Shown here: piece after piece, positions 11,415-13,349 of the stretch | How positions within the stretch are numbered: position 1 is the first letter of the stretch | Layout: every line of letters starts with the position of its first letter | Source of the DNA: Sminthopsis crassicaudata | Lineage: Eukaryota | Reading direction: 5' to 3' | Assembly: GCF_048593235.1 (NCBI RefSeq) | Contig: NC_133619.1 | Span: 651,784,558-651,848,557, forward strand | DNA length: 64,000 nucleotides | Position numbers and translations under genes: made by a program | Notes under the pieces: model-generated | Database searches by the model: none | The model's input: only the letters and a program-made list of their open reading frames with translations | What the model was told of the DNA's origin: nothing

Positions 11415-13349
11415 ATGGCGGACGGGCAGGTGAGTGCCGCTGGCTCTGTGGCGGGCCCGGACTTCTCTGGAGCCTCGGCCACCGGCAGCACGGCCCCGCA
11501 GAGCGGCGTCTGAGCCACCCAGCCATGGGGCGGCGGGGGTTGAGCCGCGGCATCCGCGGCCCGGCCGGGGCAGGGAAGAATCACGTGGCCTCTGGGTCTC
11601 GGGCCGGCCTTGACTCCCGCGTCTCCTCCTGCTCCCTCAGGTCCTGGTGATCGACGGGCGGGGCCACCTCCTGGGCCGCTTGGCGGCCATCGTGGCCAAG
11701 CAAGTCCTCCTGGGTAAGTGCGGGGGCGTCCGCGCCCACGTGGGCCCGGGGACGGGGCGAGGGGCCCGGGGAGGGCGCGCGGCAAGGCCGATGACGAGGA
11801 ACATTCACCATCTTTCGTTCGAGTCTCACGACCATGAGACCAAACCATGCACCGCTCTGAGGCCTAGCCCGACCCCCACTCCCCCAGCCCCCAGCCGCGC
11901 TCCGGCGCTGACCCGGGCCCCTTGTCCCCGCAGGCCGCAAGGTGGTGGTGGTTCGCTGCGAAGGCATCAACATCTCCGGGAACTTCTACCGGAACAAGCG
12001 TGAGTCGGGCGGGAACGGGGTTCTGGCGGCGGCTGGCAGGTGATGTCCTTTCTCACGATGGTCTTCAGAGGCCTTACCCCTGGTCCCTGCTGATTGTGCC
12101 TTAAGGCGGAGCTGATGCCGGCCCTGGGGAGGGCGCCCCTTCCAGGACCCGGGACAGCTTTTCACCCCCTTCTCCCCCCCTCCAGTGAAGTACCTGGCCT
12201 TCCTCCGCAAGCGCATGAACACAAACCCCTCCCGAGGACCTTACCACTTCCGAGCCCCCAGCCGGATCTTCTGGCGGACCGTGCGAGGTAAACGGGGGGA
12301 GAGCCCTGCTCGGGCTGGGGCCGGGCCGGGCAGTGATGATGGCGACTTTTGTCATAGGTTCGAGTTTAGCGACCATGAGATGACAAGATCCATGCACCTC
12401 CATCTGAGCTCTCTGGGGGGGGGGGGAATTTGTGCCCAGCTCGAGAAGAGGGGTGGCCCCTCACCAGAACTCTTCTCCCCAGGCATGCTTCCCCACAAGA
12501 CCAAGCGAGGCCAGGCTGCCTTGGAGCGCCTCAAGGTGTTTGACGGCATCCCCCCACCCTACGACAAGGTGAGCTCCCCAAGGGCTCTGCCCCCCCGGCG
12601 TCAGTGATGCTCCGATACCTACATTGTTTGAGTTCTCCCTGAGAAAAGCAGTGTTATCTGAGACGCCCAACTTCAGGCCAGCCCCGGGTGGGAGGCCCAT
12701 CCCTAGTGTTCCCCCATGGCCTCATTGATTGGCTCCTTCCCTTGCAGCGGAAGCGCATGGTGGTCCCAGCTGCTCTCAAAGTGGTCAGACTGAAGCCAAC
12801 CAGAAAGGTGAGTGCGAGTGCTGGATTTGGGGTCTTTTCCTGATATTGGGGGGCTCTTTTTGGAATTGGGTGCTGGGGGACCCAGGTTTGGTGAGCAGAG
12901 AGAAAAGGTGTCCCCAGTGTGATCCCTTCATGTATTCCCCCACTACAGTTCGCATACCTGGGGCGCCTGGCCCATGAGGTTGGCTGGAAATATCAGGCTG
13001 TGACTGCTACATTGGAAGAGAAGAGGAAAGAGAAAGCCAAGATTCATTACAGAAAGAAAAAGAAGCTTACGGTGAGACTCGGGGTGGGGGGAGCCACTGG
13101 AGACACCTGGCAGATGATGTTTGTTCTCACGATGGTCTTCGGATGCCTCCGGGGTACTGCCGACAAAGCCACATGGCTCAGCTGATGCCAGAGGGTTTGG
13201 GGGAAGGTCTTAATAGCTGCCAGGTTCCTGGACCCATGTTCATAGTTTGTTTTCTCCCACAGAAACTACGCAAACAGGCAGAGAAGAACGTGGAAGGCAA
13301 GATCCACAAATACACAAAGGTGCTGAAGAAGCACGGGCTGCTGGTGTGA
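11415..13349 (+). CDS. RPL13A: 60S ribosomal protein L13a (uL13), 203 aa, 8 exons
   Basis: Exons 11415-11429, 11641-11713, 11934-11999, 12186-12287, 12483-12568, 12748-12807, 12949-13071, 13263-13349 = 612 nt. [26 protein letters not shown]...KKHGLLV. AATAAA at 13354-13359. Confidence 0.99.
11785..11865 (+). ncRNA. SNORD32A: Box C/D snoRNA SNORD32A (U32A) orthologue, RPL13A intron 2
   Basis: AGGCC/GGCCT terminal stem; C box ATGACGA 11791-11797; D box CTGA 11857-11860; guides ACATTCACCATCTTTCG (28S) and CCATGCACCGCT (18S); D box 73 nt from the 3' splice site. Confidence 0.93.
12031..12123 (+). ncRNA. SNORD35: Box C/D snoRNA of the SNORD35 family, RPL13A intron 3
   Basis: GGCA/TGCC stem; C box GTGATGT 12040-12046; guide TCTCACGATGGTCTT then D' CAGA; D box CTGA 12112-12115; 70 nt from the 3' splice site. 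Confidence 0.88.
12328..12411 (+). ncRNA. SNORD33: Box C/D snoRNA SNORD33 (U33) orthologue, RPL13A intron 4
   Basis: C box GTGATGA 12333-12339; internal TTCGAGTT..CGACCATGAGATGAC; 18S-type guide CCATGCACCTCCAT; D box CTGA 12404-12407. Confidence 0.88.
12597..12667 (+). ncRNA. SNORD34: Box C/D snoRNA SNORD34 (U34) orthologue, RPL13A intron 5
   Basis: GGCGTC/GACGCC stem; C box GTGATGC 12604-12610; guide TACCTACATTGT; D box CTGA 12658-12661. Confidence 0.92.
13107..13191 (+). ncRNA. SNORD35: Box C/D snoRNA of the SNORD35 family, RPL13A intron 7
   Basis: CTGGCA/TGCCAG stem; C box ATGATGT 13114-13120; guide TCTCACGATGGTCTT then D' CGGA; D box CTGA 13182-13185; 77 nt from the 3' splice site. Confidence 0.92.

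Follow-up and report, generated by a model that had tools for sequence, protein, structure and literature searches.

The introns of RPL13A host a cluster of small nucleolar RNAs (snoRNAs) that is usually taken to have four fixed members; mouse research on oxidative stress and glucose metabolism treats these snoRNAs as one unit. A stretch of 64,000 nucleotides (nt) of the marsupial Sminthopsis crassicaudata (contig NC_133619.1, positions 651,784,558 to 651,848,557 of the forward strand; hereafter the window, with position 1 as its first letter) raises the question of whether this set holds in all mammals. A first-pass annotation, made from the letters alone, had proposed an intact fifth member, belonging to the SNORD35 family, in intron 3 of RPL13A, together with an old duplication under selection and a possibly ancestral layout of the cluster. 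Our analysis indicates that this element is probably a functional intron-encoded SNORD35 (U35) box C/D snoRNA, and that intron 3 would be the marsupial address of the second copy of this family. The reading is based directly on family membership, an intact anatomy, the intron context, the presence of the element in two further marsupials, conservation exceeding that of the flanks, and its absence from this place in sheep, snake and emu. What is new here is the address of a known family member, as family, target and mechanism are already known.

Identity, anatomy and target of the intron-3 element

A scan of the whole 64-kb window against Rfam with cmscan revealed six RNA genes, five of which are box C/D snoRNAs located on the plus strand within 1.5 kb. 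One of these five is the SNORD35 match in intron 3 of RPL13A (RF00211, positions 12035-12124), which reached 60.9 bits where the gathering score is 36, with an E-value of 6.9e-12, and covered positions 1-88 of the 88 positions of the model, so that the proposed family membership and intactness were both borne out. The element displays the features of the box C/D class, namely boxes C and D, a terminal stem, and internal boxes D' and C' (Table 1), and all the parts that had been named before (C, guide, D', D and stem) lie at the places where they had been put. Its terminal stem has a core of four base pairs (bp), GGCA/UGCC, and lengthens to 8 bp (12031-12038 with 12116-12123). The six inner pairs of the stem (alignment columns 7-12 with 95-100) are formed in eight of eight SNORD35 copies, showing UA, UG and CG variants at one pair. 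These eight copies, from which we also built a custom covariance model, comprise three marsupial intron-3 copies, three marsupial intron-7 copies, sheep 35A and sheep 35B; the UUAA loop of the internal hairpin is found among them only in the three intron-3 copies. A conserved second guide upstream of box D was considered as well; we rejected it on the grounds that the window species, Tasmanian devil and koala read differently at the critical positions (GGAG, GUAG and UCAG).

The antisense guide UCUCACGAUGGUCUU is complementary to the stretch AGACCGUCGUGAGA of 28S ribosomal RNA (rRNA), which is universally conserved. The same guide is carried by the copy in intron 7 of RPL13A in the window and by the intron-3 orthologue of the devil, and exact matches to its 14-nt core occur twice in the 64-kb window, namely in the intron-3 and intron-7 SNORD35 copies. 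At the fifth base upstream of D', G12061 pairs with the first C of 28S UAGACCGUCGUGAG, the target letters being those of the supplement to a chicken snoRNA survey (PMC2653536) and not those of this genome's ribosomal DNA. In the duplex printed there for the chicken U35 orthologue GGgCD67, the rRNA 5'-UAGACCGUCGUGAG-3' is set against the guide beside a CAGA D' box, and the methylated C stands at the fifth position, in agreement with the earlier assignment of a G at position -5 to the target C. The 109-nt sequence of GGgCD67 itself was compared by eye only. A comparative table gives the U35 target as human 28S Cm4506, yeast Cm2956 (snR73) and Arabidopsis Cm2949.

The host gene provides an ordinary setting for such an element. 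The reading frame of RPL13A was found to be intact after joining the exons and checking the frame, with 203 amino acids (aa) encoded by 8 exons and every intron of the GT-AG type, and its product is identical across all overlaps to the RPL13A database isoforms of Sarcophilus, the Tasmanian devil, from which the window differs in its introns. From the end of the intron-3 snoRNA to the 3' splice site there are 66 nt, close to the favoured distance of about 70 nt that the first-pass annotation had given and inside the range of some 60-80 nt that suits splicing-dependent processing, and the other four RPL13A snoRNAs show distances of 67, 69, 79 and 73 nt; the element is therefore placed like the accepted RPL13A snoRNAs. 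The snoRNA-bearing introns of the gene measure 179-220 nt, and the empty intron 6 measures 141 nt, showing no relic of SNORD35 with the custom covariance model. As to transcription, four small runs from the source organism (0.65-0.85 gigabases), whose RNA nature is only guessed, contain 93-96% of the sampled words of positions 11700-13300, introns included. Such a word coverage is hard to reach with low-coverage genomic DNA and gives an indirect hint of transcription, with the type of the runs being a guess.

From this anatomy and the family membership, we infer the following processing, particle assembly and target methylation. The intron-3 snoRNA would be co-transcribed within the RPL13A pre-mRNA, and the proteins of the small nucleolar ribonucleoprotein (15.5K/SNU13, NOP56, NOP58 and fibrillarin) would assemble on its C/D kink-turn and terminal stem. 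Splicing and debranching would free it from intron 3, and exonucleases would trim it back to the terminal stem and the particle. The 15-nt guide upstream of D' would then pair with AGACCGUCGUGAGA, allowing fibrillarin to 2'-O-methylate the first C of GACC, which corresponds to human Cm4506. As the intron-3 and intron-7 copies would serve the same 28S site, they are predicted to be redundant, like SNORD35A and SNORD35B of placentals.

Conservation of the intron-3 copy among marsupials

The corresponding loci of Tasmanian devil (L006) and koala (L007) were reached via FLT3LG proteins. Both contain an orthologue in intron 3, located at L006:14524-14609 in devil (58.6 bits with SNORD35) and at L007:14114-14201 in koala (50.4 bits), and the five RPL13A snoRNAs occupy the same introns in the window species, devil and koala. 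Comparing the window with koala, the body of the intron-3 copy is identical at 70 of 84 positions (83%) and its flanks at 55 of 98 (56%, plus 40 gap columns; Fisher p = 6e-5). The corresponding figures are 70/88 for the body and 55/99 for the flanks of SNORD33 in intron 4 (Fisher p = 4e-4), 59/70 and 66/105 for SNORD34 in intron 5 (Fisher p = 1.5e-3), 78/81 and 63/109 for SNORD35 in intron 7 (Fisher p = 1.4e-10), and 78/83 and 65/104 for the snoRNA in intron 2 (p = 1.4e-7). The margin of body over flank in the intron-3 copy is thus at the level of SNORD33 and SNORD34, with only the intron-7 SNORD35 and the intron-2 snoRNA being held more tightly. Within the window, the two SNORD35 paralogues agree at 42 of the 45 positions of boxes, guide and stem and at 19 of the 40 others (Fisher p = 2e-6), just as had been said of a pair sharing the guide and differing inside. 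All three intron-3 copies retain the hairpin and stem along with boxes C, D' and D, and where the terminal stem differs between species the bases still pair (U-G in the window, G-U in devil, C-G in koala). Since the orthologues are shared, the bodies are far better conserved than the flanks, and the stem pairing is kept, the alignments indicate that the intron-3 copy has been under purifying selection since before the split of dasyurids and diprotodonts. Its origin would be older than this split, which is a lower bound only. The idea of an old duplication under selection fits these data well.

It is also conceivable that the copy is slowly decaying as a redundant duplicate and represents a pseudogene or poorly expressed copy that looks intact in dasyurids while no longer serving rRNA methylation. 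The identity of 83% between window and koala compares with 96% for the intron-7 copy, and the Rfam score of 60.9 bits in the window compares with 89.7 bits for intron 7, going down to the values given above for devil and koala. Moreover, the koala guide UCUCGCGAUGGUUU carries an A-to-G change, after which wobble pairing remains, and a deletion of one nt, and the koala box C' reads UGUUGA. A pseudogene of this age, however, is expected to look like the flanks, with 56% identity and many indels, whereas across the dasyurid-diprotodont split the body has been kept better than the neutral flanks, by as much as in SNORD33 and SNORD34. Furthermore, the boxes, hairpin and stem are kept in three of three species, with stem changes preserving the pairing, and window species and devil both have a perfect guide. 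We therefore regard decay as unlikely and the reading as a functional snoRNA as the better one.

Several observations nevertheless weigh against the functional reading. Among the five snoRNAs, the intron-3 copy ranks last in conservation between window and devil and close to last between window and koala; its evolution is much faster than that of the intron-7 copy, and within each marsupial it has the lowest SNORD35 score. The distance to the 3' splice site is 66 nt in the window, 72 nt in devil and 103 nt in koala, and this koala spacing, together with the changes in the koala guide, points to a relaxation of constraint in one lineage or more. As the intron-7 copy is redundant with it, loss of the intron-3 copy would be tolerable. 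In addition, the absence of SNORD35 from RPS11, described below, is established for the window species only, and the runs with about 95% of the stretch are RNA by guess only. The koala guide itself may reflect relaxed constraint on a redundant copy, a small retargeting or an assembly variant.

A different role of the element, such as a shifted or non-rRNA target, an end of a long non-coding RNA of the sno type (sno-lncRNA) arising upon skipping of exon 3, or an effect in cis on RPL13A splicing, appears very improbable to us. It draws on the koala guide, in which the neighbouring C now stands at position 5 counted from D' and would be the predicted target, on the occurrence of snoRNAs in the consecutive introns 2, 3, 4 and 5, on the non-canonical roles of Rpl13a snoRNAs described for mouse in the literature, and on RPL13A database isoforms of devil and wombat that skip internal exons. 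The canonical rRNA guide, however, is unchanged in the window species and devil, and the variable stretch upstream of box D offers no conserved second guide. The role of Rpl13a snoRNAs in lipotoxic and oxidative stress, to which the first-pass annotation had alluded, is known from the mouse literature only.

SNORD35 addresses in other lineages

Our comparison of SNORD35 addresses covered the window species, devil, koala, sheep, snake and emu, with chicken taken from the literature. In the window, RPL13A carries SNORD35 in introns 3 and 7, a SNORD32A-type snoRNA in intron 2, SNORD33 in intron 4 and SNORD34 in intron 5. Devil and koala show the same arrangement, including SNORD35 in introns 3 and 7, and their loci end short of RPS11. 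In sheep (L004), SNORD35A is located in RPL13A intron 6 (L004:12801-12887) and SNORD35B in RPS11 intron 3, while the SNORD32A type, SNORD33 and SNORD34 occupy introns 2, 4 and 5; introns 3 and 7 of sheep RPL13A are empty. Within sheep introns 1-3, the top score with the custom SNORD35 model was 4.4 bits, and intron 3 shows no relic. Together with the papers describing four Rpl13a snoRNAs in mouse and human, this supports the claim that eutherians have no intron-3 copy. For mouse, Snord35b is placed in Rps11 by the literature, and in chicken the sole U35 sits in RPS11, in "intron 4" by the numbering of that paper (PMC2653536).

In the window, RPS11 contains no SNORD35 at an Rfam E-value of up to 10; the custom model gave only noise, with at most 8.6 bits, and the intergenic DNA is likewise without a relic. 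Its intron 3, the intron that hosts SNORD35B in sheep, is merely 77 nt long. The intron-3 element of RPL13A thus lies neither at the SNORD35A locus (RPL13A intron 6) nor at the SNORD35B locus (an RPS11 intron), and both marsupial SNORD35 genes are found at other addresses than their placental counterparts, with a copy number of two in both groups. RPS11 of the window species either lost its SNORD35 copy or never had one. Since RPS11 carries a copy in sheep, mouse and chicken, whereas that of the window has none, a second SNORD35 copy may be needed within marsupial RPL13A.

Outside mammals, RPL13A of the snake Ahaetulla prasina (L002) has no SNORD35 in any intron and no relic, judged with both Rfam and the custom covariance model; it carries SNORD33-family copies in introns 3 and 6 (L002:16580-16663 and L002:22315-22397) and SNORD34 in intron 5. 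RPL13A of emu (L003) also has no SNORD35 in any intron and harbours a SNORD33-family snoRNA in intron 2 (L003:10317-10396) and SNORD34 in intron 5. RPS11 is outside the locus in both species. Emu RPL13A has this one SNORD33-family snoRNA, and its intron 4 is too short for one. The snoRNA addresses within RPL13A are generally labile. The check with the SNORD35 model that the first-pass annotation had suggested gave matches in RPL13A intron 3 of window, devil and koala, and none in RPL13A of snake and emu.

These data bear on whether intron 3 is the ancestral position of SNORD35, therian or older, which was lost in placentals. The intron-3 copies have a long branch (0.23-0.38 changes per site) and the ancestral boxes discussed below, and they are not evidently recent copies of intron 7; moreover, that sheep intron 3 shows no relic is weak evidence after about 160 million years. 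Against this stand RPL13A of snake and emu without SNORD35 in any intron, the sole chicken U35 in RPS11, sheep intron 3 with nothing above 4.4 bits, and a marsupial-only duplication that the tree does not reject (p-AU 0.41). An ancestral intron-3 position is in our opinion improbable, and the earlier suggestion of an ancestral layout was not supported by the comparison: given snake and emu RPL13A, the chicken U35 and the window RPS11 without a copy, the marsupial layout looks derived, or at best therian, and not ancestral to amniotes. A marsupial rearrangement of a known snoRNA cluster is more likely for the intron-3 copy than an ancestral state.

In the papers open to our search, there was no description of SNORD35 in marsupials, and automated annotation based on Rfam would easily detect the intron-3 copy. 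Some database entries for the two host genes deserve mention. The Dromiciops "L13a-like" entry (L001:10001-10354) is an intronless retrocopy with an open reading frame (ORF) of 117 aa and several substitutions, and the Chrysemys entry (L005:10001-10477), annotated as RPS11/uS17, is likewise an intronless retrocopy with an ORF, of 158 aa, and not the intron-containing gene. Protein clusters of mammalian RPL13A and RPS11 include short "bacterial" entries (Neisseria, Helicobacter, Klebsiella, Shigella and Staphylococcus) on contigs of 250-560 bases, which look like host-DNA contamination of bacterial assemblies. In one cluster, RPL13A and RPS11 entries occur together, along with a 585-aa "L13a" of Fukomys damarensis, which, judged without its sequence, may be a read-through fusion joining both genes.

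Copy types and origin

The SNORD35 copies fall into two types by their internal boxes. D' CGGA with C' UGCCGA, the 35A type, is common to the three marsupial intron-7 copies and sheep 35A, and D' CAGA with C' UGCUGA is found in the three intron-3 copies (C' of koala being UGUUGA), chicken GGgCD67 and sheep 35B. Between the types, two positions differ, and these compensate each other as a single pair, A with U or G with C. The A-U state occurs in chicken, so that CAGA/UGCUGA is ancestral, and the intron-3 copy has kept it, as the RPS11-hosted copies of sheep and chicken did. The 35A type is then marked by a shared derived double change, which argues for a 35A lineage older than the split of marsupials and placentals, and against a recent origin of the intron-3 copy from the intron-7 gene. 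The RPS11 copy could be its source.

The topology of the likelihood tree is in weak agreement with this. In it, the intron-3 clade has a support of 94-96 and is set off from the other copies by its long branch. The grouping of the intron-7 copies with 35A has a support of 55/32, and the placement of the intron-3 clade is weakly resolved. Topology tests gave p-AU values of 0.41 and 0.28, and the marsupial-only duplication (p-AU 0.41) was not rejected. Retroposition as a visible mechanism was rejected, as there is no A-tail and no flanking direct repeat or target-site duplication beside the element. Relocation from RPS11 is our favoured, unproven history.

A joint reading of these points is possible, though we put it forward tentatively. 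An RPS11-type copy would have entered RPL13A intron 3, about 8 kb upstream, and then been lost from RPS11, the 35A-type copy would have come to lie one intron downstream (7 instead of 6), with the copy number being two throughout, and the koala copy would have slipped by one base and may target the neighbouring C. If this is true, RPL13A-RPS11 would represent a clean natural case in which, under dosage constraint, a snoRNA switches hosts between adjacent ribosomal-protein genes and retargeting begins.

Gene neighbourhood and features of the window

RPL13A is preceded by FLT3LG, whose exons in the window are 94% identical to Sminthopsis FLT3LG, and is followed by RPS11 and then mir-150. The order FLT3LG-RPL13A-RPS11-mir-150 is common to the marsupial window and placental sheep. 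The mir-150 precursor (21499-21578, minus strand, 70.1 bits with Rfam) lies directly downstream of RPS11, and its sheep counterpart is located at L004:22875-22955. A stop-free frame of 416 codons (9232-10479, plus strand) spans two FLT3LG exons and the surrounding introns, and is very GC-rich; long ORFs in this GC-rich DNA are a by-product of base composition. Runs of N occur at 39697-40111 and 46720-46875.

Table 1. Coordinates of the intron-3 snoRNA, its parts, its host gene and neighbouring features in the window.
Feature	Positions	Strand	Remarks
SNORD35-family box C/D snoRNA, RPL13A intron 3, mature body 85 nt	12035-12119	+	Rfam RF00211, box parse, devil and koala orthologues
Terminal stem, 5' strand GGCUGGCA	12031-12038	+	Inner 4 nt within snoRNA body; predicted fold, partner 12116-12123
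Box C GUGAUGU	12040-12046	+	Last U usual for the family (Rfam consensus AUGAUGU)
Antisense guide UCUCACGAUGGUCUU	12051-12065	+	Complementary to 28S AGACCGUCGUGAGA; G12061 is fifth nt upstream of D'
Box D' CAGA	12066-12069	+	State also in sheep SNORD35B and chicken GGgCD67
Box C' UGCUGA	12088-12093	+	Fourth base U matches second base A of D'; C with G in intron-7/35A type
Internal hairpin GCC-UUAA-GGC, upstream of box D	12097-12106	+	3-bp stem invariant in 8/8 copies
Box D CUGA	12112-12115	+	Rfam match and box parse
Terminal stem, 3' strand UGCCGGCC	12116-12123	+	Predicted fold and alignment
RPL13A coding region, 8 exons	11415-11429, 11641-11713, 11934-11999, 12186-12287, 12483-12568, 12748-12807, 12949-13071, 13263-13349	+	
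RPL13A intron 3, snoRNA host	12000-12185	+	186 nt, GT-AG; 35 nt ahead of snoRNA, 66 nt behind
RPL13A intron 6, empty	12808-12948	+	
SNORD32A-type snoRNA (U32A type, SNORD33-family), intron 2	11784-11866	+	RF00133, 65.3 bits
SNORD33, intron 4	12326-12413	+	RF00133, 53.8 bits
SNORD34, intron 5	12597-12668	+	RF00147, 42.7 bits
Second SNORD35, 35A type (D' CGGA, C' UGCCGA), intron 7 (last)	13109-13189 (Rfam match 13109-13194)	+	89.7 bits
RPS11 coding exons 2-5	20146-21070	+	Intron 3 20446-20522 (77 nt); intron 4 20653-20946 (294 nt)

Significance

Our results show that mammalian lineages vary in the make-up of the RPL13A cluster and in its intron addresses, with the number of SNORD35 genes remaining two. 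This bears on the movement of intronic snoRNAs between introns and hosts, and on the question of whether dosage calls for two copies. It is also relevant when the design or interpretation of the mouse "Rpl13a-snoless" work is transferred to other mammals. The understanding of snoRNA function is unchanged, because family, target and mechanism are all known.

Comparison with known systems

The closest counterpart of the intron-3 copy is SNORD35B of placental RPS11 with its chicken relative GGgCD67. Both carry a guide for the same 28S cytidine, the boxes D' CAGA and C' UGCUGA, and a 3' stem end of the form ...UGC(C/U)GG, and both are hosted by a ribosomal-protein gene of the FLT3LG-RPL13A-RPS11-mir-150 neighbourhood; in placentals, SNORD35B is likewise the second, redundant copy. 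They differ in the host, which is RPS11 (intron 3 in sheep, "intron 4" in chicken) versus intron 3 of RPL13A in marsupials, and in the internal hairpin loop and both spacers, which are lineage-specific. The shared CAGA/UGCUGA boxes represent an ancestral state and are no proof of common descent, the tree leaving this relation weak.

SNORD35A, located in RPL13A intron 6 in human, mouse and sheep and in intron 7 in marsupials, shares with the intron-3 copy the host gene, the guide, boxes C and D, the terminal stem and the spacing to the 3' splice site. In comparison, it occupies another intron, displays the derived compensating pair D' CGGA/C' UGCCGA and a 3' stem end ...UGCCAG, and has other letters at roughly half of the non-functional positions. 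Yeast snR73 and Arabidopsis AtU35 (Rfam clan CL00056) address the same cytidine of the large-subunit rRNA; they are distant members with other genomic arrangements, likened by target and not by sequence.

That intronic snoRNAs duplicate and move inside their host genes has been described before, in the chicken snoRNA survey (PMC2653536) and by Hoeppner and Poole (PMC3511168). As in those cases, the intron that a SNORD35 copy occupies depends on the lineage, be it within one host gene or in a neighbouring one, and the snake offers a parallel for such mobility, its RPL13A carrying the SNORD33-family copies in introns 3 and 6 and not in 2 and 4. What sets the marsupial arrangement apart from the known movements is that marsupials and placentals have different addresses for both SNORD35 copies and yet keep the same copy number of two.

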